A DNA stretch of 64,000 nt from Syncephalis fuscata S228 (taxonomy: Eukaryota; Fungi; Zoopagomycota): contig JAHLTZ010000016.1 of assembly GCA_025786725.1 (NCBI GenBank), positions 310,001 to 374,000 of the forward strand, written 5' to 3'. A model generated the notes under the pieces. It was not told where the DNA came from and made no database searches. It was given only the letters and a program-made list of their open reading frames with translations. The translations under genes and the position numbers were made by a program. This document shows positions 1,563 through 37,041 of this stretch, one piece after another; the first letter of the stretch is position 1, and every line of letters begins with the position of its first letter.

Positions 1563-2867
1563 CTAGATATGTGCAGCGGTTAAAGACGCCACCTGCCATG
1601 TCGACGAGTCTAATGATTGATCCGTCATGCCAAAAAGAAGAGGAAGCTCTGGCTCAGTGTTATCGGCCATCGCCGCTCCAAGCATGGCTTTTGAATTTAA
1701 GACGTCATTAGGATCTTGCCAAAAATCATGCACATCACTAGGATTGAATGGATACTGGCCGGTATACTGCAATGGCGATTGTTGTTGTAGCTGTTGGTGT
1801 TGATAGTGATGATGATGCTGCTGTTGTTGTTGTTGCTGCTGGAACTGGTCCATGCTAATGCTAGTATTGATGCCCGACAAGAGCTCATGGGTAAGGAATG
1901 CATCGGCTGGCATACCGAGTAATAGATTGGCATCCAATGTGGCATACATGTCGGGGACAGAAGGGGGCGAGTTTAACAACAGCGTGCTATCATGAGCATT
2001 GATATCTGAAACATCTATTAATAAAGTGGATCGATTAGTAAACTAGAATATTAACGGGTATAATCTACACCGCCAAAGATATAGATGACGTACCAACGGA
2101 GACATTTGGTGATATGCCTAAGTGGGCCTCAAACTGGGCCAGACCCTGAAACGATGGCGAACCATCCTGACAGGCCGATAATGTTGGACTTAAAATGGTT
2201 GGTAGCAGTGTTGGGCTGCCGATATGTGGCGACATCAAAGGTGACATTAACGCCGGTGGGCTTGGTGGCATCGTATCGATCGACTCGTCAAATAGATCCG
2301 ATGAAACATTTGATGGACGCAACTTTGGATGCTTTTTTTTAAAGTGAGCCGTCAAATCTGGACGACGAGTGAAATGGACATGGCATAACTAGAGTATAAT
2401 AAATAAATAAATGAATTGTTAATATTAGCGATGATGATCAATAATGAATAATTGTAGTAATAATGGGTAATAGCCAGTAAAATACATTAATATTAATACA
2501 AATATTAATAATTTTAATAATGTCTATCATCATTACACCTTCATTAATCCATAATAATGCTTACCTCGCAGGCAAATTCCTTCCAGCCTAATTCACGTGC
2601 CAAATGGCCACGGATATGTGCTTCAGTGCTGTAGGAGCCGGGACGGAACCGCTTAGAACAAGTTCCCCAATGACACTCGACGGTAACATTTGGATTTGTC
2701 GTCGTTGCACGATAGAACAATCCATGATCTTTACGCCAGTGGTCGAGCAGCACTTTGCCGGAGCCATAGCTATCGGTGATAAACGAGCAGCCCTGCCATT
2801 TACACCGTAGCGATGCTGGTCCACGATGTACCGCCCGGGTACGTGCTGTTGCTGTTGCTTGCTTCAT
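1563..2867 (-). CDS. ZF-1: divergent PacC/Rim101-like three-finger C2H2 transcription factor (exons 2867-2565, 2388-2094, ~2013-1563)
   Basis: CKWQGC...H...H and CHWGTC...HIRGH fingers carry the Trp-containing CxWxxC motif. Finger 3 is FACE|LCHVHFTRRPDLTAHFKKKH after splicing. Ser/Pro/Gln-rich tail. Confidence 0.8.
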
Positions 2868-4168
2868 GATGAATAGATGTTATTTGAATGAAAGAATGCA
2901 AAAAGAAGATATTGACAAATGGATAGACCCGTCAGACGCAGATCGATTCAAAAAGAAACAAAATAAAAATGAATCGAACCGGCTCGGCAGTCGAAAACCG
3001 AAAAATGAAAGTAAATGACAAAAGCGAAATTAATTGCGTGCGTATTGTGGCGGAGCCCATGGTACTCGGCCTTTGCATTGGCGTATTTATTACCATTTCA
3101 CGAGACAGCACCACAATCCATATTGCCACTTTCTCTCCGTCTAGGCACCAATGCCCAAAACGGATTGTTTCTTCAAAGATAGTCACCTTGCTGCACAGCA
3201 TAGCATGTGCACCGCTAATAATTGCTACTCAGTCATCATATGGTCGTCCTATTGCCGTCGTTGTCATACCGTCTTCTTTGCTGCATTGTGAGCGCGAAAA
3301 TAGGCCACTTTCGTAGTGTGTGTAATGTAAAATAGGACATGCCAACCTGCTGTGTAATGTACACACATTGTGATGCCTATTCTTATCGCAAAACTGCACA
3401 TGGTGTGTCATTATCCAAAATTGCGTTGTCTACGTGTGCTATAATCGACCTGCACCGCTCACTAACCAATCAATAGACTAGTTTGTATCACACGGGCACG
3501 GCATAAGTTCCCGTTTAATTCTGTTCGGCTATTCTTAAACATTCACACAAATACACTGCATACCGCACACTACACACTACACACTACACAATACACATTG
3601 AACACACGTCTACGCATTGTCTGGATTAATGCAGTGCTTCAACGCTCTTTTGCAATCAATAAAACATGAATGTAAAATAATTGAATTGAATTGTAACACA
3701 AAGACTCTACTGTTATTCTTGGCACTTGCAGAATGAACATTGTTATACTTATGACAAATCACCAAATGGAGGAACATCCGCGCGACACAATAAGAATAAA
3801 AAACGAATGATACATGCCACGGCCAAAAGGCAAAAAAAACAATAGTCGGAACTGGACGGCGATAATATGACGAAATGACCAAACAAGGAAGTGCTGATCA
3901 TTACGCCATAGTGAATTGTATTCGTTCCTTCATCTGAATAGTGATAATTAAAAAAGAAAAGGAAAAAAGCCAAAATAGTATTAATAGAACCATGATGGCA
4001 ACAACAACGACAATTATGACTGATAATGGTACCCATTATTATTACTATTACAAGCATTAAAAAAACTGACTAATAATAAATAATAGGTACTATTATTACA
4101 ACAACTGATACTACTTTACTACTACTACTACTACATGACTAATTATTGCACAAATTGTCAACGTTTCA

Positions 4169-5479
4169 TTAAAATCCGTGACTGTAGTCGGGCACCTCGA
4201 AATTGAAATCCAATGAGCTGAACAATTCAAACTCAGGTGGTTGCGTTGACAATGGAGTAGCATACGTCCTATCGGCGGTAGATGGTAGCTCCGGCTCACT
4301 TGCAAGGTCTAATGTTTATTTTTATTAATGTGATGGTAATAATTTTGATAATGACGATGTTTTTTGTTTTTGTACGTATTGTCGGAATTTGTATTAGTAT
4401 TGCTTCTATTTTAAAATAAAAACTCCGACATACCTTTTGTGCGATCAAGAGTTGACCAGTAGTTGCTTGTGGTCAAATTCTGTTCAGCTAATGAACAAGG
4501 CCTCAAATCTTCATCACTCTTGTTCGCGCTATGTTTAGCAGACGCTTGTTTCGATACATCTTGCTTTAGGTCGTCCAATTCGTCACTAATAGTGTCTATG
4601 AAACAATAACAGTGGTCGGTTTAAATGAGCTAAAGCTTTATAAAACACCCATTTTAAGACACTTACCTTGACCATTTTGCTCCATATTCAATAGTATATT
4701 AAAATACTGATAATTCATGTATGCTGGATAGCTATGAATAAAATTGATCAGATCGGGTGCAGTTATGCTTAAAGTATTGCCATCGGGCATACTGCCAAAT
4801 GAAGTACCATGGGCCGTATCTTCTAATGGCGTGGGTACTATAGCAATGGATGTAGTATCCTGATCTATTGGGGTGAATAGCGAGACGGCTAATGGATTAG
4901 TACACGTTCCTGAGACAGCATGGTCATAAGGAACTGGTATTATTAGAGGCGACGGTTTCGGCGTCATATCAGGCTCGTCGTCCTTTGGATTGCACTTATC
5001 CACTTTAGCGCTATTTAGTGACGATGGCGGAAATTTACATTTTTTGCGATGGCGTAATATTTCAGACTTTTTGGGCGTTCGCATCGGACATCCCTTTTGA
5101 ATCAAGTATTATCAACATAAATATAATAAACATAAAACAGAACCCAATTATTAATGACAATCAAAGCTAAGATAAAGATAGATAGAAACAATAAACAAAA
5201 ACCTACCAGATGACCGCACAAATACGGCTTTAATCCATAAGTTCGGCATGTCTTTCGTGACAAGTGCGACTTGAGACAAAACTTTTTCTTTGTTGCGTAA
5301 GTACAACTGGGATAGGGACAGGTGAGTTTGTCGGAAGAACTGCGTGAGCTATGAGTCACAAGATGTTCTACAAACGCAGCAACGTCCTCTTTCTGACACG
5401 ATGTAGCGTAGGAGCAGCGTACTGTGTAGTCGCCATAAGGGCAAGATAGGTTATACGATCCATGATGAGGATGTATCAT
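4169..5479 (-). CDS. ZF-2: highly divergent zinc-finger transcription factor of the same cluster (4 exons; first 5479-5207, second starts 5093)
   Basis: LTCPYPSCTYATKKKFCLKSH, linker LKPYLC, and finger 3 CGHL|GCPMRTPKKSEILRHRKKC. Phase-consistent GT-AG exons can be traced to a TAA at 4171-4169. Confidence 0.7.
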
Positions 5480-5623
5480 AGCGCTAGCAAAAGGGATATA
5501 GTAAAAAGTATAGTGCAAAAAGACAAATTAATACCAAGAAAGTTAAGCAGTACTAAACGAAAGCTATATACGCTTAAGCAAATAGACAGAGGACGGCGTT
5601 GAGTCAATATAAAGGTGTATTTC

Positions 5624-5626
<3 letters not shown>

Positions 5627-5657
<31 letters not shown>

Positions 5658-5726
5658 TTTGTATGGGCTAGTTTACGAACAAGCGGATATGTGCGCGCGT
5701 GTGTGTATGTGTGTGTGTGTGTGTGT
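5627..5726. repeat. (GT)n microsatellites upstream of ZF-2
   Basis: Two GT dinucleotide tracts. Confidence 0.85.
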
Positions 5727-7490
5727 ATGTATCGACCAGTGAAATATACGGGCTATTGAGGAGATGAATAGTTCAGTGGTAACCTGACGAGAACAGCAGT
5801 TATGGTGTGTGGTGAGACTAGTGGAAAAAGACTACAACTCAACCAGAGCTGGCACAATTTTTCGCTGTTTAAGAATTGATAGTTGGGCGTTGCAACCTAC
5901 ATCAAAGGCAAAGCCGGTTAACGGATTTTAGCCTTGAAAAACATCGAGACGTTAGGCACACACGTTGGTATTAAAAGGGAGCAGCGTTTAATGGGCCTTT
6001 CGTAATAAAATAACATCATCATTGTTGCTAGAATGTCATTGTTGTCATCGTCACTTTAATAAATACTCTATTGCTATACTAGAATGTGGAAATATGCACT
6101 AATAACTATTGTTATCTTTAATGTATTGGGGTGGTGTATAATGCACACACACACCCACAGTAATATTCTTTTCAAACGGGCCATTTTTTGTGTAAGGGAG
6201 TAAACTCAATTGTTTTATTGGTACGATACTTAAGAAAGAGCAGAACAATTGTGGAGATTACCGGCTACTACGTGCATTATCTGTCAGAAATACTAAACAG
6301 CTGTAGATGCTTGTTCACACACGGAATGTGGTATAATTGTAGGGATTTCTCTAATACTATACGCTGCAGTTTCAACGCACTAAGGGCGTAACCTGTGAGG
6401 GAAATTCTATTGGTTCGTAAAGTTTCTTTGTTCGATATTGCCGGCTGAAATGCACTTTTAAATACTAAAACGCCATATAGAACCGCAATACGCCAAGACT
6501 TTCAAGGCGGCCTTTCTAGTGACAGATATCGACTCAAGTTGCACAATGGTTACTGCGCCAAGTGGCTATTAGATGTTTACTTTTAATGATTTTAACAAAG
6601 AAAACCATGTAGCAATGAAGGTGAGGAGGAATGGGCAGAAATCAAAGAAACTAAAAGTGGGAGATTGAGAGGGACGGAGTCGTAGGTAAAGGTAGCGGCG
6701 GCGGTAATAAGGAGGGGAAAGAAAGAAAGCGAGAAGAGTGCGCATTGTTAAGTTATACGATGAATAACAAAATAATAAGTAAAAGTCTAAGTCCATGTAT
6801 CCGTGTTTTACCACCACTATAGCTTTACCAATGCATAAACAATAGACAGTGTACAAAAGCACCATCTATAAGCAATGATACTGCGTAATGGTATACAAAA
6901 CACGGAGATTAAGGTGGAATACTTTGTTACCGCCGTAATAATTCAACGACTATTGGGCAACTCGCTCTCGCTAACTCTCTTGTCGTGGCAAGTGACCATA
7001 CAATCGCTTGCACGCACAGTAGGCAAATTGACTGGACAGTGCAAATAAAGAAGGAAAGAATACAGGGAAGATATGCTAGGGACATGCAACGCCGAAGTGT
7101 CGACGAACAGCAGGAAACGACCGAAGAAAACTGGATAAAACACAAAACAACGCAACTGGAAAAAGGAAAAACTATAACGAGTAGAGGAAGATGTAAAAAA
7201 ATAAGCGTTGTATGAATGAGTAATTGTGCGTGCATGCGTGCGTATAGATTGTATAAATTATATTATAATGTTAACAGAAAAGATTATAATACACCCATCT
7301 ATTAGATCGATATACAAATAATCACTAATTAAACCATCATATTATATCAATAAACAACTGTACACACTACCATAACAATAAAATAGTGGCATAGCACATT
7401 ACATCGCTTCACACGTCATTCACCTTTCTAAACTTCACAATCGAAATAAAATGATTGGATGCTACTACTGCTATTCTGCTACGGCTGCTA

Positions 7491-9350
7491 TTACTGGAGA
7501 TGAGCGTGGTGATGATGATGGTGGTGAACGGTAGTGGTGGTGGTGGTCATTGGCTGTAGCATAGTTGGCAGTTTACGGGCGCTGCTAGGCATAATAGGGA
7601 AGTTGGCCTGAGATAATGGATTGTAAGCAGGATCGCATTTGCCATAGATCATAGGCGATGGCATATTTGTAGAGGAGAAAAGAGGATGATCGAAGCTATT
7701 GGCGGAGACGGTGCTGCCAAGGCTTTTCACGCTAACGTTATCGCTATCGTCCGAGTCGGATGACGACGACATAGCAATCTTGCCTTCCAAGAGTGGCAGC
7801 CAATGGGAGACATTATCAAATGCGTTGTCACCTTGGACTAGTTCGGAAAAGCTGGCACCATCACCACCATTAGCGTTCATAGTATTATTAGCAACCATTG
7901 ATGGGCGTTGTGCTTGATAATAATGATCATCCATACTTGGACTTTGGGTTTCAGTGTCTCGAAGACCTGTATAAATAAAGTAGTATAATATAAATAAAAT
8001 AATTGTTAGCATAATAAACATATAAATTAATAATAACAAAATAGTGCAAAACAACCAACCAACCAAACAAACAAACAAACAAACAAACAAAACAAACACG
8101 CACACACACAACGCTTATCGCCAATATTTAGCAAAAAGACACGTACGGGGATAAAAGCGGCAGTCCAAGTTAGCGGGACAAACGCGCATACTTGCCTTGC
8201 GGATTGACCAATATATGAGCCATTGGGTCCGTTGGGCAAGCTACCGGTGCACTGACGGGCGCCTCGTTAAGGTGTGGTATGGGAAGGCAAGTGAGCCAGG
8301 GTGATTGACAAATTGTTGATAGCCATGGCCAGGCTGATTCATCGACGAAAAGTCGGGTGACATGGCAAAGTGGCCAGCGGCTTCCATCATCGTCATTAAC
8401 GAGCTACGGTGGTCATTCATGCCATTAGGGGCCATTGGGGCGCTAATGGGGGATGCCGCCGATACAGCTGTAAAGGCATAGTCCGATAGTGCTGGCGGTG
8501 GGGCCAATGGACCAGAGAAGGTTGGTGGAGCAGAGTGGGTAAATGAATACTCTGGCATAGCATCACACGGCTGTGAAGGAGGAATGCAGCTAAAGTCGTC
8601 CTCTGGAATGCTTAAACGGCGTTCACGTTCCTCCTTAACGCGCGATGCAGTCGAACGACCAGCCCGTGGGCGGAGTGGAGTAGCATCAGGGTGCTTACGC
8701 GCTAGATGCTTCTTTTGGTCGCCGCGGTGTTTGAATCGTTCATCACAAAGCTATAAAAGGCAATAATAAATACACGTGAATTAGCACCATTGACTAACAA
8801 ATAAAGGCAAATCATATGAATGCAAATGATTATGGATGTGTGTACACAAACACGAGTCAAATGCCAATGTACACAGCCCACATAGGCATTGCTGTGCCAA
8901 AATGGTCATTGCTGTATGAATACTTACCTCACAGCCAAAGGGGCGCCAGTCTAAATGTTTCTTCATGTGCGACTTTAGTCGGAAAAGACTTGGTCGAACT
9001 TCATCGCAGCCGACCCAACGGCAGGTAAGGCCAGAGGCACTGGGCTCAGCACTACCTACAGCTTGCAAGCGAGACGACAAATGCTCAGTTTCAATATGTC
9101 TCCAAATTGCATCGCCAGTAGCAAAGGCGTGATCGCAAAGCATGCAATCCTCCCAACGGCAAAAGAACGGGCCGAGTAGACGAGCATTATTGCCATTACG
9201 GCTAGTCGTGATACTGCCACGACGAATAGGGCCGGCAATACGACCGTTCATGGACGGCGATGCGCTCGGCGACAACGACGGGCTGTTATGGAAGGGAAGC
9301 ATACCGTTTTCAGCTACCGACGACAAGGAGAAGTGGGCAAAATTGTCCAT
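7491..9350 (-). CDS. ZF-3: PacC/Rim101-like C2H2 transcription factor (exons 9350-8928, 8750-8196, 7966-7491; apparent 1-nt deficit near 8282)
   Basis: CRWEDC...HIETEH, CRWVGC...LKSHMKKH, and RPFGCE|LCDERFKHRGDQKKHLARKH. Poly-His C-terminus. Confidence 0.8.
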
Positions 9351-10355: not shown

Positions 10356-13300
10356 GCCAAGAGTGCAAAGTGGGTGTAAATGTGTGTATGTATTGGCCAG
10401 CCATCATAATTGCTTGTATCATGACTGGTGTACAACCGGTTATGCCTCCGCAGCGGAGTCTCGTTCAATGAGCGTAGCCAACGGCCAGCCAACAAGACGA
10501 AGCGACGAAGGAGGAGGAGGAGGAGGGGGGACAGAACGAATGCCAGTTGGTGTTACCATGTTGATGAATATTTGCGTCAATGGCTGCACCCGGATGAAAA
10601 TGCAAGCCGGTCTCGACTTCGGCAAAGCAGCCAATCAGCAAGAGCGGTTTGGACAATGTTTTATTAAAGAATTGCTGCTTTATTCAGTTAACAATGAAAA
10701 TACGCATTGCTACATTACATCATTGATGGTGCTACTGTTGGCAATCTAAATAGATTATGCATCATTGCCTGCTTGTATACCTGTCTACCTGTTCGTATAC
10801 CTGATGCTGCTGCTACCCCATCATCGTATGGCGAGCAAGTGAGTAAGCCCACTAACGTGAAAAATACTTGTGCGCGCATGTGCATGAGAATTAATACATG
10901 TGTGTGTGTGTGTGTGTGTCATAGTAAAGCAGAGATGGTTGCACTTACGGTGGCACACACACACACCAACATACACAAACTACGCACCCATTATCAATCG
11001 ATGGAAGCGCAGAGGAACAAGGCGCACTTTACCAATCGAGAAAGTATCATGATGAAATAGGTTGAACACAGTGTTATGACAATACAAATACATACAAAAG
11101 TAGCGAAACAAACTTACAGCCCCTTGTTTCGTAAAAATGTGCCACCAAGTCGATGTTTCTTTCTTCCATCGTCGCCTCGACGCCGTCTTGTACAGCTGAC
11201 CATGCAGTAAAATGGCATTTTGGACCCTTACCGGCAATCAGCCAATGATACGCGTTAGCGAACTATAGATCACATGAAAACATTTTTAGTGCTGCTGTTA
11301 TTGAAACGATGGCGTTGTAAAGCCGTCGAACAATCTAGCAATGAATTACTGGTATCGGATGATAGATATACCGCATGCTTGTTCACGGATTGGACACATT
11401 ACTGGTTGCGAAATGCATCTTATGGCAACGATTACCATTAGTAGATGTTTATTACTAGTTATTATCATTATTGATGGTCAAAGTTTTCACAGCCGTACTA
11501 GAATACACCTTTAGCATTGGGTATTGACCGCGCTAAGTATGCACGAATAACAAACGAATAAACGAATGAATGGTTGCTGCTGAAAGAACAAAGGATAGCC
11601 TGTTTTCTTTCTCATTCTTGCCTGCTTCTAGCAACATGCAAAGTGCACGTTTCGGGGGCGAGACTTTTGCGCTTTCGCTAGTTTTTTCAGAAAACCGGTC
11701 TTGCGCATTTCTTTTTATTCATTATCACTTTCTCAAAAATGATCGTGCATGAGCGACCCCGCCCATAGGCAAGCCAGTAGTACGGTGCTGAATGAGCGTC
11801 AACAAGCCTTCGTTTGTGTTTCATATCGAGGAGCTCGTTTATGGTTACTCAATAAACGTAAAAATGGCCGGTCATCATAGTTAATGGCGTGCTGTTTCAT
11901 AATAAATGATTGAAGATGTGTAGCGCAGACAGTGAATAAACTATTTTACAAATATGAGGTGTTCCACGTCGCCCTGTCGTTCTGACTTAAGCAAGTTGAA
12001 CACGGCCTTGAGCCTAGGCCGTGGAAACTACAGCTATTTCCGTAGTTTATGGCTACCTTGTTAGAGGCGGTCCGCGGAAATTTGTTTAATTCAAGACTGA
12101 TCAATATTCATTAATATAGACCTGTTTGCGAAACCCAGTACAACCTTAGATATGCCTTGGCAGTACTATTCTTAACTGCCATCCAGGTATCCGCCGCTTG
12201 CCTTTCGCTACAAGAGGCCAGCTTGTATTCAAAGTCCTAAGGTCTTATGCATCCAGATCGTCCCCAAGATCTACCAGTATTTTTGGCCAGCACTGTAACT
12301 TGTCGTTAACGCCACAGTCAGCACTGTTGCTGTCGTTGTTGTTGCAGCTGTTGCATTTGCTATCAGTGCCATCAGTGCTATTTTTATTGCTGCACACATA
12401 GCTACAGCCATGATAAACCAATGTCGTGCAAGCATGGAAGGGAGAACAGGCGTTGAGTCGATCCATAAAAGAGATTAACACAATTGCTTTTCGTTCACTC
12501 CACCAATGCTGACAATGGATTTAAAACTACATTACCATACTTGGACACTAATTAAAAACTACTAATTGAGTTGGGGCGATAGACACTTTGAATGGATGAG
12601 GTGCCAAGCGTTCCCCACGTGCATGGTATCCATTTTGGGACGCAATTATTAATCTGCAATGAATGGCCGTGGTCGGTGAATGAAAGCCCGAAATCACCAC
12701 ATGAAGAATACTGCCTTCCTTGCATTGTAGAAAAAACGGCTATCATTGCACAATCTCTCACATTCACTCGCACACACTTGCACTCACATCACATCACATC
12801 ACATTACGGCAAATTGTACAGTACAACTAGTCATGTTGATGTGGATCTTTTTTAAGAAAAACAAGATGCTGTTGATGACTGTACTAAATTGAGCTGCATA
12901 GCTTTTAATAGCCATTTACCCGAATTGCGCTTTTGCCGGCTAATTGCATAGAATAATGCATTGGCGGCATCTGCGATATAGTTACCGACAAAATTATAGA
13001 TTGCTTGACTGATGAGTAATGACTATCTATTACTTTGATAATTCGCTTGGCAGATGTGTTTTATTGTTGTTCCCGTTCCAGCCACGCGACATGATGAGAC
13101 ATCCATTGATCATGTTATCTATTGTACAGCAGCAATAAACAATGTTAATAAAATTTTATTCACAGTCCCAGCAACATCCATAGCAACAAAGCCATCTCAT
13201 TGAGCAAAAGGTAGCATTATGCCCATATTGCTGGTCACGAGAACAGCGGTAACATAAACGCTGCAGTCGGAGTGTGCCATGCATTTGGCTGCCGCTTGGC

Positions 13301-13419
13301 CTATATTGGTATACACGCCTACGCTTGGCTAATAAGCTGCTCTATTTTTGTTTACGCAAGCTGAACAGTTCCCGGATAAATATTATGTGTCTGCTTCTAT
13401 GAAAACAATTGCTGCCAAG
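10356..13419. promoter_or_regulatory. Seven PacC-type GCCAAG sites in the divergent ZF-3/ZF-4 intergenic region
   Basis: GCCAAG or CTTGGC at 10356, 12156, 12603, 13046, 13295, 13324 and 13414. Confidence 0.5.
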
Positions 13420-14656: not shown

Positions 14657-15614
14657 ATGAATAGCGAATTTTCTAACGCAATGATTCAAAAGTCGCTTGA
14701 TACGACGACAGAGTCGGTTGATTCGATACTGAACAACGTACTGTATTGGTGCGCGGTAGGCTACTTCCCCGCACAGTTAGAAGACTTGACTAATCAACCA
14801 CCTGTGGAACCCATTTCGCCAAATGGTTCGCCGCTATTGCAACAGCAGCAATTCGATGGACATGCTTATGAACATTTGCACTCACATTCACATTCGCATC
14901 CATCTTGCGAGCCAGCAGCCGTCAAACTGTCGCCAACCATGCCACCGTCGCCGCTATCGATGCCTGCTTCGCCGCTGACCATGAATACCGCTTGTATTAG
15001 CTTGCCAATGATTAAGCCAATTGCGGCAGGTGTACTGCCCAGTCCACAGTCGTCGCTATGCATGGAGCAACACTGCTACTCTATCGAACATTTGGCGCCT
15101 CAATCGCTCGAAATGCAGCCATCGCTTAGTTTCGACACGACAATCTCATCCGCATCCTCGTCTTGCGACTATGATACACCAAAATTCTCTGTACAGCATC
15201 GGTGTTTATGGGACGGATGTGGCCGCGAGTTCGACGTGCAGACGGACTTGCTTCGGCATTTGAGCGAAGATCATGTTGGTCGCAGCCTGCGCGGTAATTT
15301 GTGCCTTACTTGCCGTTGGCCCGGATGCTCACGTGTGGCAAAGAAGAGAGATCACATGGTCTCTCACCTAAAAAGCCATGTTCCCTTTTGGCCATTTACC
15401 TGCAAGGTGGGTTTATTTACTTTCTCAAAATGGCTATCTGCAATTAATTTGCCGACTTGCGGCCTTTTGGAAAATAACAATTATCATCATCAATACACAA
15501 TACTAATTTTTCTTTTTTGTTTGCTTCAAATAGTATTGCGGTAACCGGTTTAAGCACGCCACTGGATTGAATCGTCATATCAATCGTCATGAAATGCGTG
15601 GAGAAACTCAATAA
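14657..15614 (+). CDS. ZF-4: PacC/Rim101-like C2H2 transcription factor with C-terminal fingers (exons 14657-15406, 15534-15614)
   Basis: [51 protein letters not shown]|YCGNRFKHATGLNRHINRHEMRGETQ*. Confidence 0.88.
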
Positions 15615-18600: not shown

Positions 18601-19284
18601 TACTCATCTCTGTTATTTGTCGTTTGTTGTCGGTGGTCACCTTATTTGCTCTTGCTATCACTCGTTATTTACGCACGTTGCCACACTAAGCCACTGATCA
18701 TCATTGGCCATTTCTTTCATTACGTCCTGTATTTGGCTGGCTAGCTTATTAGATTGCTTTTTGCTTACTTGTCGGGTATCGTAGACACATATCACCAAAA
18801 ACTATCGAATATATGAAGGTGTGAAGTGCCTGCTTCATCATTCTCCGCACTTTGCTCCATTACTATATTCGTTAATAGGGCACAGCATTTTGGTCGCTTT
18901 TATCCGGCTCCGCTCTTGGAAAAACGCCACCGCTGCCGCTGAGCAATAACAACGACATACTCTCTTTACTAGGTCATCATTCTTTTGTTTTCACACATCA
19001 TTTGTTACATCCAGTGCTCGTCTCTATATACATCTTGGCCGCACTAAATAGTCGCGCCTTCTTGAACACCAACCGGTTTATTCAAGCAACAGCTAATTAT
19101 TTCTACCACCAACTACTGCGGAAAAACGCATATATATTCATATAGAATATCTGCATTCCATATATCTCGTTGCCTTTGGCCTCGTATCTATATTTGTTTG
19201 TTTGCGCGCTATCGCTTGGCCTGTGTTCTCGCCTAGTTTACTATCATCTAATTGCAATTCTGCCTGCTACAGAACTTTAGCATT

Positions 19285-21950
19285 ATGGACAACACTGTTG
19301 CCGGACCAGGCATGCTGTCCTTGTCGCTTCGTCCTCTTAACGAGGATAGTCAGCAGCTGGCCTGTCGCTGGCGTGGATGCCAGGATGGAAATCGTCTATT
19401 TTGTCCACAGTCGTTGTATGACCATCTTTGTCAGGCTCATGCCAGTAGTTCCTATGCTGCATTGGGTCTAGCACAGGATTTGTCTGTCGGCAATGGTAGC
19501 GCTGTGGATGGTGATGGCAAAACAGGTGACATTGGCGAAGGTGTAGCTTGTCTATGGGAAGGTTGCCAATATCGCTGCAAGAGTAAAAAACGCCATCACA
19601 TGAACAGCCATTTGCGTAGTCATGTGCCACTGTCCCCATTTCAATGTCATGTAAGTGGTTTGAATAATGTATATTACTGAATTTTACGTTAATTTTAATT
19701 TTAATTTTAATACCAATTAATTTATTGTCTTGGGCATCAATATCATATAGATTTGTGCTGTTACATTTAAATGGAAGTCAGATCTTACTAAACATCTCCG
19801 ACGCCAGCACGATATTACTGGCCCGGCTGCCAACCAGGCCATGTCTGCCGAAGACAATGCTCTAGAGACCGGTTCAATGATGTCCGATGAAATGGACTTT
19901 GCCTCAGTGCCTAGTATGGGCATGCAAGAAGATGTACGATATGATCCGTTGTTCAGCCAACAATGTAAGCAATAGCATATTAGATAGTAATTTGAAGCTA
20001 TACTATTATTACAATTATCCATTATAATATGTATACTTACATATTATGATTATAGTGCAGGCAAATATGGCGGCTGTGGCTGCTGCGGCTGTGGCTGCCA
20101 ATAACAACAATGGTATGTCTATTAATGGACAGCATGGTAATGAGATGGATGCTGCGCAGCTACAAGCGAGCCGAGAACGTTCAATCTCGGTATTACAACA
20201 CTTTATTCAAGTTGTACGTGAAGGTCGCCTTCAGCCACATTCAAATGATCCTGGTAAGCAGTCTAATTAGCGCAATGCCTAGTTGTTATATTTCAATCAT
20301 TTATGATATCAATCATTACTTATACGCTATATGCATTTTTTAGCACTAGCAGTATGGAGCGAAGAATTATCTAAATTAGATCTTGCTACAATTAAACCAT
20401 TGTTAGCAAGTAATCCAGATGCACTTCAAATTATTGAAAGCTTTTTGGATGTAATGAATGTAGAGTCTGGTAGGTTATTATAGTGTGATTTAAATCATTA
20501 ATTTACACATAGCATGGCTGAAATGACACATGATGACGAATACTTACTAATAATACATCTACAATGTTGACAGGCCACGTTGCTGTTAAGAATGAAATGT
20601 CGACCTCGCCACAGCCTGTACCAATGATGGATAGCATGTCCTTCCTTGGACATAACAATGTTAGTCCATCTGTACCTTCTAACGACAAAAGTATTACTTC
20701 ATCACCGGCTATTATGGCTGCTGATGGCTTTAATGGTGGTGTACCTCTTACAAACCCACTAAGCTCAATGGGTGGCTTATTTGCCATGGACCAGACACAG
20801 TCGATGTACTCGGCTGGTGTTACCTACCCGGCTGTCACTGCAACAAATGACCCAGCTGGCATTGCTGCTGCTGCTGCTGTCGCTGCAATGACTAACGCTG
20901 CACATCCAGCAATTTTCTCACCACCAGCTCAACATGCGCCGTTTTCGCTGCTTCAATCGCATCAAAACTCGCAGCAAGCTACTCCATCGCCGCATATGTC
21001 GTCCATGTCGCCACCAATCGATGAAAGTCTTCTATTTGGCAGCTCGATCGATAGCTCGTCCTTTGTATACTCACCACCAGCTAAAATTGACGAGGAGCCA
21101 GTGTCATCGCCAGGAGCTCCATTGATGGATGCACAAATGGCCGCTGCATCGCAACTCGATGTTGCTCAATATAATTGGTTATTAAACCAAGAGGTAAGCT
21201 ATGTGCTCGACACTATATGAATTTATCAGCAAACAGATTTTAATCAATATACTAATTATTATTTTGCATATACAGTATCCAATGGGCATTGAGTCGGCTA
21301 TGGGCGTACAGCCAAGCGAGATCTTTGGTGCCATGTCACCTACCAACATGGTAGCTCAGCAAATGGCCAACAATCCACAAGCACATATGTTCAACTGGAC
21401 TAATCAGCTCCGGCATACGAATGGTGCCGATGAACGATCACTACGCCGAGTACAATCAACACCGATGCTTGTTGAACATGCCCAGCAACGGCCAACAATT
21501 CGATCGCCAGGCTCACCTTCAATGCTACGTCCAATGAGAAGCACAGAACTACGCGCCCGAATGGTGTCGCCGTCCCGTAGTACCGAACGCGCCACACGAC
21601 CAACACAGCACGCTACAAAGGCTAGCATGTTGCGCGCCTCACAATCAGTTGATGCGCTACGTATGCACGCGGCAGTAGCAGCCGCAGCCGCAGCCGCTAA
21701 TCCAAATCCCACTATACCCGAACATGGCAATGCACCCGACTTTAGCGCTAATCCCGCGGCAATTGGCATGGTTGGCGTTAATAATCCGGTTAATCCAGCG
21801 ATACAGATGGATAAGCGAGGCAGTGGCCGCGGTCGTCTCGACACGGTTCTTCGTCGTATGCAGCAGCTAACACTACGCAATCCTACCGGTGTCACTGGTC
21901 AAGTGAAATTTAAACGATCACTTGAACGCATTCGTTGGCAGGGCCAGTAA
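19285..21950 (+). CDS. ZF-5: PacC/Rim101-like C2H2 transcription factor (exons 19285-19650, 19751-19964, 20056-20253, 20344-20469, 20574-21193, 21276-21950)
   Basis: CRWRGC..LYDHLCQAH, CLWEGC..KRHHMNSHLRSHVPLSPFQCH|ICAVTFKWKSDLTKHLRRQH. All junctions are GT-AG and phase-consistent. Confidence 0.85.
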
Positions 21951-24484: not shown

Positions 24485-25222
24485 ATGAGGCTTTCCCTTG
24501 CTGTCGTCTGCATCCTCGTCGTGGCCTTTGTAGTCAATACAGCCATGGTGGACGCTAACCCAAATAGAATTCGTCGTGGTATGTTACAATCAGAATAAAT
24601 ATGTTAATAATGTACCAGCTAACATTATGGTTGGACTAATGATGGTACTAGCTCGTAAGTCTTAATTATGAACTATTGCCCCAAAACTTACTGTATACTT
24701 TTATATGCATAATAAACGCGATAAATATATGTAAATAGTCGGTAAGTTTAATTATACATAATTATTGGCGTGCTAATTGATTTTGCCTATTAATTTAAAA
24801 TGGGGTGAACCAGTGCCATTGATTAGAAGTAAGTTTAGTACAAGATTGCAAGTCAAATACTACACTGAGAGTGCTAATATGCTGAATTTCCATCAATAGG
24901 AGGTAGACTAGACTAGAAATAATTAGTTGCTTATTTAACTAATAGTGTTTATATTTAATAATCTGCATCAACAGCTGGTAAGTAGCGTTGTATATTAGTT
25001 GATTATATATTAAACATGCAATACACATTATTTATACTTAATAATCTGTGTTAATAGATTGTAAGTGGTATTGTATAATAATTAGCTATCAGCTAAATGT
25101 ATATTGTGTATTGTTTTGTACTTAATAATCTGCACCAACAGTTGGTAGGTAGTATTGTATATTAATTGTTTTATACATTAATTATATGACATATGATGTA
25201 TATATTTATAAATATAGCATAA
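24485..25222 (+). CDS. Micro-exon gene for a 43-aa secreted peptide precursor (exons 24485-24578, 24652-24654, 24739-24741, 24814-24828, 24900-24902, 24975-24977, 25058-25060, 25142-25144, 25218-25222)
   Basis: Signal-peptide exon followed by eight 71-84 nt GT-AG introns, with AG-NNN-GTA micro-exons between them. The joined sequence is exactly 44 codons ending in TAA: MRLSLAVVCILVVAFVVNTAMVDANPNRIRRALVPLIRRADFA*. Confidence 0.8.
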
Positions 25223-26865: not shown

Positions 26866-28620
26866 TTAATAGTGCATATGATGCTGTGACTGCGGATGTA
26901 AATGCTGCTGCTGCTGCTGCTGTTGTTGTTGTTGATGATGATGTAAATGATAATGATGAAGACCAGTTGGGGAAGCAGGATGGATAGAACCATAGGCAGC
27001 ACTAGTGGTAGGCGTAATAGGTCCGTTCATAGTCGTCGACAATCTATCCGATGCACTGGTAGACCAGTGACGTGTATGAGACGGCTCATAGTGATGGGTA
27101 GCTGCTGATGGTGATGATGCCGAGGGCAATGGTAAATAGCTAGCTGAAGATGAGGCAGAACTATTTGCCGTCAATGATGGCGGTGGTAACGAGGGAATAA
27201 AGCCATGGTGTGATGGTCGATGATGAAGCATTGGCTGCGGACATGAATTTGATCGCTGATGCTGAGATGATACTGATCCGGTAGCAGCAATAGGTGAAAT
27301 AAGACCCGATGACATCGTCGTTTGATGGCCGTGTGGTGAAGGCAACGTGAGAGTGGATGGTGGATAATGGGCTGATACCGGTGTGGGTACTGGTGCTGGC
27401 AATGTGTGTCCTATGGGCATTACAGATCGGGTGCCAATGTTGCCATTATTATTAATAGTGCTGTTGTTCATTGATATCATCGCATGGGGATGCGAATTTA
27501 CCGCGGGAAGTATTGTGCCGGGTAGCGGAGACACCATACCCGATAATTCTAATCCCAGCTGATTGCTTTCAAGTTCACGTCGTTCCATATGTTTCCGTTC
27601 ATGTTTCTTTAAATCTTGGCGGCGTTTATAGCGCTTATCACACACGCGGCATCGTAGTGGCGTTAATGGTACATGAACTCGTAAATGAGATGTAATATGG
27701 TCTCGTTTGTTGGTCGATGTTTGACAGTCCTCCCATCGACAGGTTAGACAAAGATTACCACGAGCATGTCGTCCTACGTGATCATCACACAGATGCTGGT
27801 AAAGTGTCTCAGGCCCATGAAAGGTACGTGTACATTGGCGCCATCGACAATGATACAAATGCGACTGTCCGCCTTGACTACTGCAATTGTTGCTGTTGCT
27901 GCTACTATTGATGGGTGATGTACCACTAGATTCTAATAAAATAGTAGATGTTGTACCATGATTATGATTCATTGCAGAAGCAGATAACATTGAAGTAGAA
28001 TATGGCAGCTGTTGTTGTTGTTGTTGTTGCTGTCGAGCTGCTGTTGGATGATGGACAGCATTTAGGCCATTCGACATCACAAGAACCGGTGATGCAGATG
28101 CCGTACGATTGGGTGTGCTATGATAGCTATAGTTACTAGCACTTGGTAGGCTGTCTGCCGATGGATAAGGCGAGTGGGCCAATGATGGATGCGGCTCCAA
28201 CAGGGTGGACAATGAAGGTAAAGGTGGATGCTGCATTGGATGAACAGGTGACGGTGTAGAAGCATAAAAAGGGCCCGTTCTAATTGACAGAGGCGGCGGC
28301 GTTGGTGGTGTATGCGGTGTGGCAGCTGTACCCGTAGCAACGGTCCTTGCCGATACAGCAGTGGTATTTGTCGCTATAGCAGGTGGTGAAACTGAACCCA
28401 TTCGATGCTCCAAATGACTAGTAAACATCAATGGCGGTGACGGCGATGCAGATGATACTGAAGATGCCGATTTACCGCTATTGTGTTGCTGATAATAGGA
28501 CTGAAGTGGCGGTGACAATTGTCGATTGCACGGAATAGGTAAACACTTTGAAAACGCAAGTTCAGTAGGAACAACCTGCGGTTCAATAATGTGGACGGGC
28601 GACGACGACGAATACGACAT
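26866..28620 (-). CDS. pacC: ZF-6: intronless PacC/Rim101-family transcription factor, the most canonical copy
   Basis: [69 protein letters not shown] closely matches the PacC DNA-binding domain ([27 protein letters not shown]). The family assignment is secure; strict orthology is not. Confidence 0.85.
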
Positions 28621-29392: not shown

Positions 29393-29396
<4 letters not shown>

Positions 29397-29426: not shown

Positions 29427-29428
<2 letters not shown>

Positions 29429-29836: not shown

Positions 29837-31166
29837 CTTGGCGACTGTTTAAACAGTATGCATACATTAGATTTTATATCGTGATGCAGAGTCACCATTA
29901 CACGGCCACTGCATTCACGTCATAGCAATGGCTGCAATGGGCACGTTAAAAGTGCAGCAGCAATAGCTACTGTAGCAACGGCAGTATTAGCAATAACTGT
30001 CGGTGCTAACACAGTAACAATCATGATCAAAGTCATTGCAACCATGGTCATGTTATAAACAAAATAGTCCGCTGACTATTAGTGCGGCAACATATCTATT
30101 AATACTAATGCATGCTACTGATATATGCCGAGCAGCTGCAGTAGATGCTGTACCGTGCAGATTCTATTTACCCTCTATTCGCCAAGACTTACCCTGCTGG
30201 TTACTGTCACGATTATTATACTGCGGCTAAACTTAAAAGGCGTGATATGATACTAAAGTATGTGAACACAAACGGATAACGACTATGACGTCGGCGATAA
30301 GAAAATGAGAAAGCGCAAATGATGCGAACCTCGCGACAAGCAAGAAAAAGGCAAGTCAAGAAATGTGGTTGCAGATCGGATGAGTAAGCACCGTCAACGG
30401 ACAAATATTCAGCCGATCAATAAGACTACTGGAGAAACGGTCGTACCGGCATTCGCCGTTTAAATATCCAACAAATCCAGCTAATACGTGTGGGTATGTG
30501 TGTGTGTGTGAATTGGTGTATGTATGGATTTGTATTAATAGCAAAATTAGCCAATTGAGGAAACGACAATTTCTTGGCAACAATAAAACAAGGATTGTTT
30601 TGCTTGGCGTGTAAAGCAAAAGGCGACTAGGCAAAATAAAGCAGCTAGAGGGGAAGTGATTGATGAGTGTAGTAATAGTGGTAGCAACAGTGCAATAATC
30701 AATCTGGTGCAGCCTATGTTATGCAGTTCATATATAAGAAAAAAATTAGATCAGTGGGTGCTGATTCATCAAGGCGTTTGGCGATGGCGAAAGATAATGG
30801 CTTGGCGATTCGCTTTCTTCCGTGTCAGTGTGTCAGTGGGGCGTCTGTGTCAATACGATAAAAAGTAGCCTAAATCGACCCTTGGCTTTTTATCGGTTAT
30901 AATTAGGTAAAACAATGAATGCTTCCAGTGCCGAATTCCTTACAATGTCAAAACGATTCAGTTACAATAATAGGATGATTATTGATAAATAAATAAACGA
31001 GACAAGTTAGCAAGTGTTTAAAAATGTTTTTAAATAATTGCGGGTGTTTAACCTGATTCTTGGCAGGGAGTACCAACTGAAAAGGATCTGTTCGGGAATA
31101 ATGTGATATGAATTGGTAAAAATAGCACTTGAAAGTGAAGGGCACAAGTAATAATCACACTGGATG

Positions 31167-31201
<35 letters not shown>

Positions 31202-33415
31202 TTGCCAATAACGGACTGCTTATAGCGGCAATATTAGCAGTTGTATGGCGATATCGGCGCTGGTGCCGACTGATGAATAAAAGTAGCAAAGCAGCTGAAA
31301 CACTCAACTAGAAATACGGAGTATGATTAGTATACACAATGTCGGGTCAAGGCGAAGAATTTACGGCTAAATAACGGAGTGAGTCACGCGCTTCCACAGC
31401 AAGGTAAGAGAGAGCAAGCGATAGAGATGGAAGAAAGAAATATAGATACAGGTACATACCCATACACGTGCACACTTATAGTTGAATGATAATAAACTAA
31501 AAATTGTATAAATGGCTATTTATTAATAGACACGGTGTAGTAACTGCGTGCTTTAACCTCCTACCATGTGTGTGTGTATGTGCGTGCGTGCGTGCGTGCG
31601 TGCGTGTGTGTGTGTGTGTGTAGTGCACATGTACGTGTACATTAATTCAATAATATAATGATAATCATCATAATAAGCCATTGTAGGTTGTTAGTACTAC
31701 TTGTAAATAAACGAGCGTATTCTTGGTCAATTTGCGCCAAGACTACGAATGCTTAGCGGACTGGGTACTCAAGGGCTGTGGCATTTTTTTCTCAAGTAAA
31801 ATACTTGAAAATGCTAGAAATAGAGCATACCATCCTTGATATTGACGCTATAGTTAGTACCTGAAGGCGTGGTAGCTCGTTTTCAGTACGAATATAGATG
31901 TGCTAACGCTTTAGGAATAAGCTATTCGGTAGCACATGGATGGGGCCGATCGCCGCCTATACTAAAGTAAATCCGTCGGCGTTCGTGTGTTGCCACCTTT
32001 CTTTCCCCCCGCGCACCATGCTCAAGGAAAAGGATGTAAACGTGCAGAACCAGTTGCCGTCAGGGGCTTTATACATGGAAAGGAGGCTTGCTAGTGCAAA
32101 TTGGTAACTAAAATAACGGATATACAACAAGTTGTACCGTGGTGTTGGAAGTAAGTAAGGGGCAGTATCAAAGCGTCACCTACTCTTAATACACACTTGC
32201 ATAGCAACGAAGGAGCAAGTTTAATTGTTGTTGTTGTTGTTATTATGGTTTACTTTTAATACGTAAATTTAATGTAATAAGATGATTTGACTACATTTTA
32301 TCGTTATGCATAGACTCGGATTTAATGCTTCTATGTACATATGAAAAGTTGAAACCACCAAGCTATGCATGCATGTTGTTCAATAATACGACCGTAGCGA
32401 TAAACAATGGGCAGACAAGAATGAAATGATAATAAATATTATTAACAATTAATAAAATACTAATAACGTTAACAATTGCGTAATAATTAAAATATGAATA
32501 GAATAAATCAAACTATATATTATTATTAAAATAAATACACTATTTAATAGCAATAATAGCAAATGCATATCCGCAGCTATTAATTCTTTAAATTATTTAT
32601 TTAGAAGGTTCGAATAAGCCATTAATCCTAATGCTTGCTAGACCGATGAACGGACCAATGAATTACTAATGAATTAATGGTTTGGTCAACTCTAAGATAC
32701 CCCCCCCCCCAGTACTAGAAGAGTATCAGGCTGGAATAGTCAGTCAGGCTTTTGGCCCCTTTGTCCAACTATATCCTTAAATCCACCTCTACTTTTTCTC
32801 AGAACCATGGTCTAGACTGTTTGGCCAAGGTGATATGCGTCATAGACTATGCATGCAAATGTGATATGCCAGTGTACGCCAAGGTTGGCTACCGAGTCAA
32901 TGGCTGCATTGGTAAATAGGAATTGAAAAAATAAAAGGGCGCATAGGCTTGCAGGTTTTTTAAACTCGTTTTTTCCTACCACAATTACCTATGATCGTCA
33001 TTGGTGGTTAAATAGATTAGTCATGACAATAAGAATAATACCATGCTATTGCTATAATTAATGTTAATATACTAGTATTGTTATTATTACTAGTAATAGC
33101 AACGCCAATACTAGCTATTTACACAAAACAGTATTTTATAAATAAATAAATGAATCAATTAGTATTCATGCCATGTGCGTCAAATAGCTCAATTCAACGA
33201 TCCTTGAACAACATTAACCAAATGGTTGCTGTGAGAAGATGCACTTCGGGCCGAAAATAGCATCTGCAATAAAAAAGAAAACACAGGAATGTGCTTATCA
33301 CTGAGTCTCCTCATTTGTAGTCAAAACATTACACATTGTACGCCGAGCAATGATGTAATGTTACTACAGTGTGCACAAATTATTGCAAATAAATGGCATT
33401 TTTTCTACAGCCAAG
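29837..33415. promoter_or_regulatory. Eleven PacC-type GCCAAG sites upstream of ZF-6
   Basis: GCCAAG or CTTGGC at 29837, 30181, 30573, 30603, 30801, 30881, 31059, 31736, 32824, 32878 and 33410. Confidence 0.6.
31168..31200. repeat. (GAT)n microsatellite
   Basis: About 11 GAT units, intergenic. Confidence 0.9.
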
Positions 33416-33860: not shown

Positions 33861-36800
33861 TTATTCCTTATTTGTAGATGCAGCCTCTGGACTGGTCTTG
33901 ACACCTTCTGACGAGTCAGCTGAGGTCACGTTCGTTAATGATGCTTTTCGCGTAGCTGCACGAGCCTGCATCATCTGTTCAACATGTTGTCTTAAACGCA
34001 TGAGCAGTAAGCGTACACGTTCAGACTGTTCAATTTTGGGGTCAGCAATCTTTTGAGCTGCATCATCATCATCATCATCGCCATTATTGTTATTGCCGGA
34101 GGTTGATGCATCGGTTGCAGTAGTCGTTGTTGCCTCTTCCAAAAGTTCCAATGATTCTCTTTGAAGTTTACTAAAGGATGAACTACGAGCGCGTGCCATA
34201 CTATTTACCGTTGGCTTATCGTATCGTTTGGCAGCTCGACTTGGTTTTGCCGTATATCGTTTCACGCCATCCCTGGCCGCTACTTCTGTAGAGTTAGAGG
34301 CGGACGGTTTTGTATCTGCGGCCGATGCATTGCTCGATGCTGTGCTATCCATCGAAGGTCGACGTGTATTTTTATCGTCGGTAATTGATGGTGCAGATAA
34401 GCGCAGATTCTTTACCTTGTCCACTATCGATGATAGCATAGACGAATCAAACGAATCCTTCTTAGCATGGCCCAAATCTAGACCTTTATCAAGTCTAACT
34501 ACATAATTGGCTACAGGTGGCGGCATTGCTGGAACGAATGGCGGTGGAGATGCAGCATTTGTCTCGCTTAATACAGGGGATATTGGTTGAATACCAACTG
34601 TATTCGAAGGGAACAGACCCTCGCTAGGCGGGCTCATACACGATGACATCTGAATCTCCAGCTGTTTCGATAAATATGTTTGGCATTGGTGTAACTGTTC
34701 AAGATGTTCTGAAGATGTACTACGAACTAATGTTGCCAATGTATTGGGATCAATAATGGACATTTGTAGAAGCATGATTTGTAGTGCTATAGGTCAATTT
34801 AGCAGTATAGGCCATCGTTAATCATTTGAAATATAAATCGTTTTCATCATCAATCAATTCGCATATATTTTAACATTTGCATTAATAAAGTAAATAAATA
34901 AAGTTTAAATCCCATGAAAATAAATGTTATAGAATAGAAATCACAGTAATTATAATGATAATATAAATAGGATAATAGGATAATAATAATAATAATAATA
35001 GGAATAGGAAAAAATGCAGGTCATACGCGGAAAACAGTCAATAAAAGCTGAATAAATAAAGACACAAACAAACAAAAAATCATGACTATAAGCTGTCATC
35101 GAGAATAGAATAGCATAAACAAGAATGCTGTCTATTAAAAACGTAAAAAAACTATACCTACAACCAGTTGAACTAACTATAATGCTGTATAAACATACCT
35201 TCATACGATTGTGCACTATAGTATGTTATTAGTAGGCAAGTAGTAAAGAAAGAATACGCAAAGGAAATGAAACAAAATGCACATCAAGCTTGATATTGAA
35301 TACGACAAAAGAACGAATACGAACGCAAGCGCAAGTGTAAAAATAGACACGTAGTACATCAGCATAATAAAACACCATAATCGCTACAAAAGGGCGAGAT
35401 AAGTGAACACGCAAATGATTTGTCAATAGTTTACACTGCCGTAAATAACGAATGAATAAAAGGAGAAAAAAGAAGAAATACGGAAAGAAATGCGGAAAGA
35501 AGCTGGTTAAAATCAATATCGCTATAGAATAGAAATAAGATGGAAAGATGGAAAAAATGGAAAGGAAATAACGCTGTATGGAACACGATCGCTTATAGAT
35601 ATGCTATTCAAAGCTATTATCTATTAGTGTGTTCCGTCTATGTTTAATTGAAATGATTTAACTTATAATAAATTAAGGATGGGCATTGGCACTAGGCTCA
35701 TTTGAGCATGATCGTGGCCGAATGACAGGCAATACAGAGGTAGAACAAGCACGTCGACGTACATTACCATTGCCATTAGCACTAGCACTAGTATTGTACG
35801 GATGATGTACACTCTTGCGTAACAGTGCCCGTTGAGGAGAAAGTCGCGTCGATTTAGCACGTGGTGGTACTACTGGTGTCATACCATGACTATGACCACC
35901 AACATTGTTAATACTATTATACGAACTATAGTTATAATGATTAAATGCTGGGGAAAGTGTCGTCATGGATGGATGATAGACACGCGCCGCTACACTCACC
36001 GCCGAATAATTAGGCGCTGAATGAGGTCGCGATAAAGGCAAATGACTATAGGCCAGCTAGACATTAACGATTCATAACTGGTATGACTATAGCTATCATG
36101 ATCATCGCTATTATCGTTATTATTGAGACTATTCATAGAAGAATAGCAAACACCGCCACTACCACTACTTGATAGTGTGATAGGCTGTACTGAATTACGA
36201 GACATCAATGGAGTATGCATAGGCGCAGACATGCCAACTCGCATCATACCTGACGATAAATCAGCATTGGTGTATTGTTGTGTGGCCGCCACATTAAGGA
36301 ATTGGTGATATACTTCGTGGGCCGTTGGTTGCGGTAAATAGCCATCAGGGCCAGCACCGAGCATTGCCGGATCGATCATGTCGCCGGTAGCTGACGAGGG
36401 GAAAATGGCTTGGGTATCAGCTAGAGGTTAAATAGCGTTAGTATACAGCATATAAAGTTGCGTAAATATAACTGCTTACCATTATATTCACTAGAGGCGC
36501 TAGTGGTCAGGCCAGGCGACATGCTCGCCATAGGAATGTAGTGCTGTGAGTGCATGCCCGGTGTGGACATAGGCGACGGTGGCAAAGCATAAGCAGGCGA
36601 TAAACTGGCATCGACTGTGCCATACGGTAACGGCATGGATGCAAAATGACCAACTCCCATTACGTGATCGTAATCGGTACTGGGAGGCGATTGCATTTTG
36701 TCACGATGTGTATGCTCGTGACGCTTCAAGTCTGATTGGTGCTTGAATCGCGCGTCACATAATCCACAGCCATACGGCTTATAAGAGAGATGGCTTTTAA

Positions 36801-37041
36801 TATGTGAAATTAAATGATCACGCTTTGACTTTGAAATGGTACAATCGGCCCATTGACACTGAAGACATAGATTGCCGGTAGCATTGCGACCGACATGATC
36901 CTCCGTAACATGAATGAACAGGTCTTCGGCGTTTATCACCTGCTTGCCACAGCCGCGCCATAAACACACCTGTGGCCCATCACTTATTGCACCATCCGAC
37001 AAAGCTGGACTGCCCATAGATAATTCAAATGATGAAGACAT
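33861..37041 (-). CDS. ZF-7: PacC/Rim101-like C2H2 transcription factor (exons 37041-36480, 36420-36250, then either 34786-33861 or read-through toward ~35673)
   Basis: CLWRGC..HVTEDHVGRNATGNLCLQCQWADC..KRDHLISHIKSHLSYKPYGCGLCDARFKHQSDLKRHEHTH. A phase-1 donor GTATGA at 36249 matches a phase-1 acceptor at 34787-34788 that leads into ORF 33861-34775. Confidence 0.8.

Follow-up and report, generated by a model that had tools for sequence, protein, structure and literature searches.

A zinc-finger gene array in Syncephalis fuscata, very probably an ancient tandem family derived from the pH regulator PacC

PacC in Aspergillus nidulans, like Rim101 in Saccharomyces, Candida and Cryptococcus, is a single-copy pH-response transcription factor, the textbook master regulator of ambient-pH adaptation and, in many fungi, of virulence. 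In Syncephalis fuscata, a mycoparasite of the Zoopagomycota (Zoopagales, Piptocephalidaceae), a 64,000-nucleotide stretch of contig C68 (C68:310001-374000, hereafter the window) holds instead a series of three-finger genes that a first-pass annotation assigned to the PacC/Rim101 family. The locus raises the question of whether these genes descend from PacC, how long ago they multiplied and whether the copies are still at work. The evidence presented here indicates that they very probably constitute a PacC-derived, ancient and functional tandem array, and, set against the normally single-copy PacC of model Dikarya, which the annotation had taken as its point of comparison, the copy number at this locus is exceptional.

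A six-frame scan recovered seven three-finger C2H2 genes (ZF1 to ZF7) within the window, on strands -,-,-,+,+,-,- and at the places where the annotation had put them. Its count of seven did not hold for the cluster as a whole. Comparison of the ZF6 fingers with the whole genome identified three further minus-strand copies immediately beyond the left edge of the window, termed A, B and C (at C68:290129, 297502 and 302141, respectively), and the full array comprises ten genes in ~57 kb of contig C68, with spacers of 2.7-5.3 kb as measured from gene models of which several are partial in extent. The polar divergence proposed earlier, with the leftmost copies the most derived, is likewise contradicted by these additions, since A, B and C lie at the far left and are PacC-like, B being nearly canonical. 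Nor are the modules a product of chance: a profile built from the ten copies (alignment A1) scored exactly these ten genes, at 58-104 bits, across the 29.4 Mb genome; no eleventh member was detected with it, the next match being a Gli-like pair on another contig. The whole PacC family of the S. fuscata genome therefore sits at one ~57 kb locus.

The least diverged copy is ZF6 (26866-28620, minus strand), an uninterrupted open reading frame (ORF) of 584 amino acids with fingers at 27849-27589, canonical contact residues and a near-zero-length branch in the phylogeny described below. Its finger region matched 1461 proteins, the best of which are named PacC/Rim101 proteins of Basidiomycota, Mucoromycota, Kickxellomycotina and Ascomycota (55-69% identity, E 1e-33 to 1e-38); its own annotated protein was absent from the matches of this search. 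Database searches were performed with single exons, and exons were joined only for local alignments and trees. Beyond itself and its own orthologues, copy C matched Fusarium PacC-type proteins, while for ZF3 the best matches were its orthologues in the Zoopagales, with C2H2 proteins of a generic kind next. Sequence searches of the PDB returned no PacC structure, the matches being limited to generic C2H2, GLI, ZIC and ZAP1 proteins.

The architecture of the finger module extends this relationship to further members of the array. The Trp of the CxWxxC knuckle is present in fingers 1 and 2 of nine of the ten copies, and the earlier statement that six of the seven window genes carry it was borne out; the exception is ZF2, in which, as in its S. 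pseudoplumigaleata orthologue, Tyr/Pro knuckles replace Trp. Among the reference PacC modules that we extracted from the ZF6 matches, 117 of 119 are exactly 87 residues long. The same length is found in A, B, C, ZF4, ZF6 and ZF7, all of which keep both the HVGRK..NL.L.C.W linker and the KRDHITSH finger-2 helix; for ZF4, ZF6 and ZF7 the annotation had already reported HVGR..GNLCL.C.W and KRDH..SH, correctly. The modules of ZF1 (100 residues), ZF2 (98), ZF3 (98) and ZF5 (116) differ in length, and their linkers and finger-2 helices depart from these motifs. Scored against a hidden Markov model (HMM) built from the reference modules, the first six copies reached 147 (ZF6), 134 (B), 132 (A), 108 (ZF7), 103 (C) and 96 bits (ZF4), and the other four 62 (ZF5), 47 (ZF3), 36 (ZF1) and 12 bits (ZF2).

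An intron within finger 3 unites both sets. In eight of the ten copies (A, B, C and ZF1-ZF5) the finger-3 CxxC is interrupted by a phase-0 intron, positioned one codon ahead of its second Cys; in ZF2, where this knuckle is Cx4C, the intron position is given directly by RNA data. The same phase-0 intron is present in the pacC genes of Mucor lusitanicus (C-N|F-C) and Gymnopus (C-E|I-C), and it is absent from ZF6, ZF7, the pacC genes of Coemansia and Phaeoacremonium, and the other tCWCH2 (Trp-knuckle) genes of the S. fuscata genome. It is an old pacC intron inherited by eight cluster genes, and as such can help to trace descendants of PacC that have diverged very far. The intron has also been lost several times, namely in ZF6, in ZF7 and in the ZF3 orthologues of Thamnocephalis (L038 5926-6219) and of a metagenomic relative (L039 5047-5340); ZF3 of S. 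fuscata and that of S. pseudoplumigaleata keep it. One metagenome contig that is ZF6-like (L028) stops before any finger 3 can be recognised and is silent on the timing of the loss in ZF6.

We performed maximum-likelihood phylogenetic inference on the finger domains, a check that the first-pass annotation had proposed, using as outgroups three tCWCH2 genes of the same genome (L007, L009 and L010) and leaving out animal Gli/Zic and yeast Zap1. The outgroup genes have TGE/DKP linkers and lack the finger-3 intron; no such linkers occur in the cluster genes. With orthologues from other Zoopagales included, the inferred tree separated the three outgroups from a group composed of PacC, all ten copies and their orthologues with support of 98/98. 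The orthologues break the long branches, and the tree thereby resolves the PacC side from the outgroups, on an alignment that is short and with some branches that are very long. A single clade of all 20 Zoopagales sequences was not rejected (approximately unbiased (AU) test, p 0.47). Copy B fell inside the canonical PacC clade (95/94), and the copies other than B and ZF6 formed an unresolved basal set on long branches, a placement that we read as rate acceleration and not as great age. Together, the ZF6 matches, the side of the tree on which the copies fall and the intron held in common with pacC uphold the view that these genes are PacC/Rim101-derived tandem duplicates.

The age of the duplications was addressed by comparing synteny across relatives, a second check named in the annotation, and gene order was found to recur in Thamnocephalis sphaerospora, in S. 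pseudoplumigaleata and in a metagenome. The first exon of ZF3 has orthologues at 65-85% identity in these two species and in metagenomes. In T. sphaerospora, of the family Sigmoideomycetaceae, ZF4 lies head-to-head with ZF3, followed by a gene at the ZF2 position that is ZF3-like and has an FCLKSH motif in common with ZF2. In S. pseudoplumigaleata, ZF3 is followed by ZF2 on one strand, and in the metagenomic relative a single 8.3 kb contig carries C and then B; a ZF6-like and a ZF3-like contig come from that metagenome too. Each orthologue is far closer to its own paralogue than to the rest, C-type sequences being 63-66% identical to C and at most 40% identical to the others. No S. plumigaleata cluster member was found among the matches to the single-exon protein searches. 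The occurrence of syntenic orthologues in different families indicates that Syncephalis and Thamnocephalis, which belong to two Zoopagales families, diverged only after at least the ZF2/ZF3/ZF4 block had arisen by duplication, and "tandemly expanded", the term used in the annotation, fails if it is read as a recent, species-specific event. The duplications that gave rise to B, C and ZF6, as judged from the metagenomic contigs, predate the split from the metagenomic relative.

Conservation extends to the most unusual parts of the proteins. The Thamnocephalis ZF4 orthologue is 81% identical to ZF4, with an identical finger-3 helix; the finger-3 helix of C is identical in three organisms, the finger-2 and finger-3 helices of ZF3 are identical in four, and the odd finger 3 of ZF2 is nearly identical in two, the S. 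pseudoplumigaleata orthologue retaining the odd features of ZF2. By this measure, the derived helices of ZF2, ZF3, ZF4 and C are under purifying selection. The base composition of the orthologous loci is 57-59% G+C (S. pseudoplumigaleata L037, Thamnocephalis L038) versus ~39-40% in positions 1-40000 of the S. fuscata window, a shift that is large even within one genus and despite which the ZF3 fingers are still 79-90% identical at the protein level.

Gene models and transcripts bear on whether the derived copies are intact. ZF1 (1563-2867, minus strand) has a coding sequence (CDS) of 349 amino acids in exons 2867-2565, 2388-2094 and 2014-1563, with both introns of the GT..AG type, a first finger starting at 2804, fingers 1-2 at 2804-2565 and the remainder of finger 3 from 2388. 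ZF2 (4169-5479, minus strand), the most derived copy, has a CDS of 333 amino acids in exons 5479-5206, 5092-4667, 4595-4434 and 4308-4169; its first finger starts at 5443, its knuckles are of the CPY type, its finger 3 reads Cx4C...Hx3C, and its finger-3 intron spans 5093-5205. Contigs from X1, one public run of 2017 that is labelled 'RNA?', whose RNA nature is deduced from the spliced joints and whose contigs give no expression levels, show four minus-strand GT..AG joints and one loose end on positions 1500-7400. In ZF1, a joint at 2014/2094 and the loose end at 2390, which continues into exon 1, correspond to both model introns, and in ZF2 three joints fall exactly at the model introns, that of finger 3 included. 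The X1 joints thus match all introns of ZF1 and ZF2, and these two highly derived copies are therefore transcribed and correctly spliced. Unspliced X1 contigs were also found in intergenic sequence upstream of ZF1 and ZF2 (2770-4008 and 6199-7400), and these may represent non-coding transcripts, untranslated regions of some length or carried-over DNA. A plus-strand GT..AG joint of low depth (4613/4694) overlaps ZF2 and may reflect antisense or alternative splicing.

The remaining window genes were modelled from sequence. ZF3 occupies approximately 8173-9350 on the minus strand, with a first finger starting at 9161, an exon 1 that ends at 8928, a finger-3 intron at 8751-8927 and an exon 2 that is open from 8750 to 8241; a 365-residue S. 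pseudoplumigaleata protein (P0246) aligns across 9350-8173. On the plus strand, the 5' part of ZF4 (14657-15614) consists of an ORF from 14657 with fingers 1-2 at 15203-15406, a finger-3 intron at 15407-15533 and the remainder of finger 3 from 15534, which together form an exact 87-residue PacC module. The finger region of ZF5 (19252-19975, plus strand) has fingers 1-2 at 19363-19650, joined by a linker of 36 residues, with the finger-3 intron at 19651-19750 and the remainder of finger 3 from 19751. The first coding ORF of ZF7 (36421-37050, minus strand) contains fingers at 36966-36706. In all intron-bearing copies consensus splice sites are present, a GT donor being followed 57-285 nt on by an AG acceptor that restores a complete finger 3.

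We then compared the residues predicted to contact DNA, at positions -1, +2, +3 and +6 of fingers 2 and 3, which in canonical PacC read KDHS and RQDK, respectively. Canonical contacts in both fingers are confined to two of the ten copies, ZF6 (finger-3 helix KRRQDLKKH) and B (helix exactly KRPQDLKKH). In A (RHDK), C (RPAR), ZF4 (HTGR) and ZF7 (HSDR), finger 2 is canonical (KDHS) and the finger-3 helix is new. Both helices are changed in ZF5 (KHHS in finger 2, WSDK in finger 3), ZF3 (SFRS, HGDK), ZF1 (GYSA, RPDA) and ZF2 (KFCS, KSER). ZF6 and B probably still bind GCCARG, the PacC consensus site, and carry the classical PacC role, and a shift in DNA specificity is likely for the eight other copies. 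The altered contact residues in these eight make it most likely that the regulators encoded by the array differ in their target sites.

Putative PacC sites are themselves frequent at the locus. GCCARG occurs 54 times in the window, versus 32.6 ± 5.7 in shuffles. The region upstream of ZF6 is rich in GCCAAG (29837-33415; 11 sites in 5.2 kb versus 3.4 expected, post-hoc Poisson P ~7e-4), and the divergent ZF3/ZF4 intergenic region holds seven sites (12156-13419; in 5.3 kb, versus 3.4 expected), a weak excess (P ~0.06); GCCAAG is concentrated upstream of A and B too. PacC sites have been reported in the pacC promoter, and the GCCAAG clusters, in what is a post hoc test, fit auto- or cross-regulation by the canonical members. 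For the co-regulation and the developmental or host-interaction role that the annotation proposed, such site clusters in some promoters are the sole hint.

These observations are best explained by a model in which one ancestral pacC gene was duplicated locally, time after time, within the order Zoopagales and so gave rise to ten tandem paralogues, each encoding a sequence-specific DNA-binding protein with the PacC layout. In every such protein, finger 1 would pack against finger 2 by way of their two Trp knuckles, as the tCWCH2 unit, and fingers 2 and 3 would read DNA; the DNA specificities are inferred, as are any dependence on pH and the regulation of one copy by another through GCCAAG sites. 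A more ambitious proposal, which we consider doubtful, is that of an order-wide syntenic PacC cluster with at least eight regulator lineages and fixed recognition codes, cross-wired through GCCAAG or derived sites and running the host-sensing and infection programme of obligate mycoparasites. If true, such a cluster would be for fungi what the clustered families of developmental regulators are for animals.

Several findings weigh against a PacC-derived, ancient and functional array. No Pfam domain, PacC_helical included, was detected outside the fingers of the cluster genes, and the ZF6 ORF showed no BLAST similarity outside its fingers to 120 PacC proteins, C-termini included. The Pfam model of PalH/Rim21, tried alongside a control that had no match either, found no match in the genome, a result that does not establish absence; two calpain-like loci are present (C201:209084 and C2:186783). 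The helix conservation concerns ZF2, ZF3, ZF4 and C, the four lineages with recovered orthologues, and the expression evidence, from the single run X1, concerns ZF1 and ZF2. The PacC HMM scores of ZF1, ZF2, ZF3 and ZF5 (12-62 bits) are no better than those of the remaining tCWCH2 proteins in the genome, which reach 54 bits per domain at most. The assignment of these four copies depends on the intron, on position and architecture, and on a tree that was built from a short alignment and has very long branches. A tree inferred without the orthologues placed ZF1-ZF3 beside the outgroups, without support, and for that tree the AU test did not separate the alternatives (p 0.35).

The overlap in HMM scores and the placement in this first tree are what would be expected under a mixed origin, with ZF4, ZF6, ZF7, A, B and C derived from PacC and ZF1, ZF2, ZF3 and ZF5 belonging to other tCWCH2 classes (Gli-like, Zap1-like) that happen to lie nearby. 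Paired CxWxxC knuckles define 11 gene classes and do not mark PacC alone (PMC2837044), and GLI fingers 1-2 are among the solved structures that ZF1 and ZF3 match best. All four genes, however, possess the PacC finger-3 intron that the genome's other tCWCH2 genes lack, and all four show a three-finger layout without TGEKP linkers. In pairwise comparisons their scores with cluster members and PacC exceed those with the outgroup genes, the orthologue-bearing tree places them on the PacC side, and a single Thamnocephalis gene has motifs common to ZF3 and ZF2. A mixed origin is on this balance very improbable, and common descent of all ten genes from PacC is preferred.

We attach an equally small probability to the alternative that one working PacC, ZF6 or B, stands amid decaying duplicates that are non-functional or drifting. 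Decay would account for the long tree branches and for copies that are at most 54% identical to each other, in a domain whose identity to ZF6 is ~57-67% across the four reference phyla compared. It is difficult to reconcile with the retention in every copy of all zinc ligands, ZF2 having Cys in place of the last His of finger 3, and of consensus splice sites, with the complete open CDSs and spliced transcripts of ZF1 and ZF2, or with the conservation in other species of the derived helices of ZF2, ZF3, ZF4 and C. Finally, an assembly artefact, whether a chimera or collapsed or expanded repeats, is extremely improbable: we found no evidence for one, copies no more than 54% identical cannot be assembly duplicates, the genes appear in the same order and on the same relative strands in separately assembled genomes of two other species and in a metagenome, and the contigs of the separate run X1 are collinear with the assembly on 1500-7400.

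A PacC-derived array of this kind can be set against several known systems. It resembles PacC/Rim101 itself in the three-finger module with paired Trp knuckles, in the 87-residue spacing of six copies and the finger-3 intron of eight, in the linker and KRDHITSH helix of ZF4, ZF6 and ZF7 and the canonical contacts of ZF6 and B, and in GCCAAG sites upstream of ZF6 that are reminiscent of those of the pacC promoter. It differs in comprising ten clustered genes in place of one, in the altered recognition helices of eight of them, and in that no PacC_helical domain or recognisable C-terminal processing region was detected in the array genes. Additional PacC homologues beyond the core orthologue occur in another host-living fungus: clinical Fusarium oxysporum carries three extra pacC copies, in two strains only, which are dispersed, transposon-flanked and truncated at the C-terminus with their fingers conserved (PMC6994591), whereas the ten genes described here lie in one array conserved between families, with diverged DNA-reading helices. 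In another early-diverging lineage, the Mucorales, the ZF6 search matches include two PacC proteins each in Sporodiniella, Benjaminiella, Zychaea and Parasitella, and Mucor pacC has the same finger-3 intron; unlike the array genes, these pairs have near-identical canonical fingers and very short tree branches.

The cluster genes resemble the Zic/Gli/Glis, Zap1/ZafA and fungus-Gli-like classes in the unit formed by fingers 1 and 2, each of whose knuckles has a Trp. They are set apart from these classes by their three fingers, the PacC intron, the absence of TGEKP linkers and the 98/98 separation from members of these classes in the same genome. By analogy only, the KRAB zinc-finger clusters of animals also combine local C2H2 duplication with change concentrated in DNA-contact residues; they belong to an unrelated family that turns over rapidly and whose proteins have many fingers each, whereas the helices of the array are held fixed across genera. 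No ten-gene PacC array that is conserved between families and has re-coded recognition helices was found in the searched literature, which also contained no paper linking PacC with Syncephalis, Thamnocephalis or Zoopagales. The locus suggests that a single-copy regulator became a ten-member tandem family in which the DNA-reading residues, and not the scaffold, changed and were then fixed across genera. It thereby offers a natural series for studying the re-targeting of a three-finger module, points to candidate regulators of the mycoparasitic way of life of Syncephalis and related fungi, and illustrates that the regulator repertoires of the poorly studied Zoopagomycota can differ sharply from those of Dikarya models.

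Other genes and repeats are interspersed with or lie outside the array. Between C and ZF1, inside the array, a DDHD-domain (phospholipase-type) gene is encoded on the plus strand (window 188-1060 and leftwards; L021 7201-7986), and a micro-exon secreted-peptide gene lies between ZF5 and ZF6 (window 24485-25222). Some 60 kb to the left of the array, C68:227268-227858 (L009/L017) belongs to a 701-codon open frame with several consecutive Trp-knuckle fingers that is Zap1-like. Two copies of a Gli-like tCWCH2 gene, outside the PacC family and with TGEKP linkers, are located at C46:353001-353237(+) and C46:398690-398926(-) (L008 and L007), ~45 kb apart; their translated exons are identical, and the pair looks like an inverted segmental duplication. 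Within the large intergenic regions of the window, (CA)n/(TG)n microsatellites at 10884-10976 and 31570-31642 give spurious Cys/His-rich open frames, which mimic zinc fingers in a naive motif scan.

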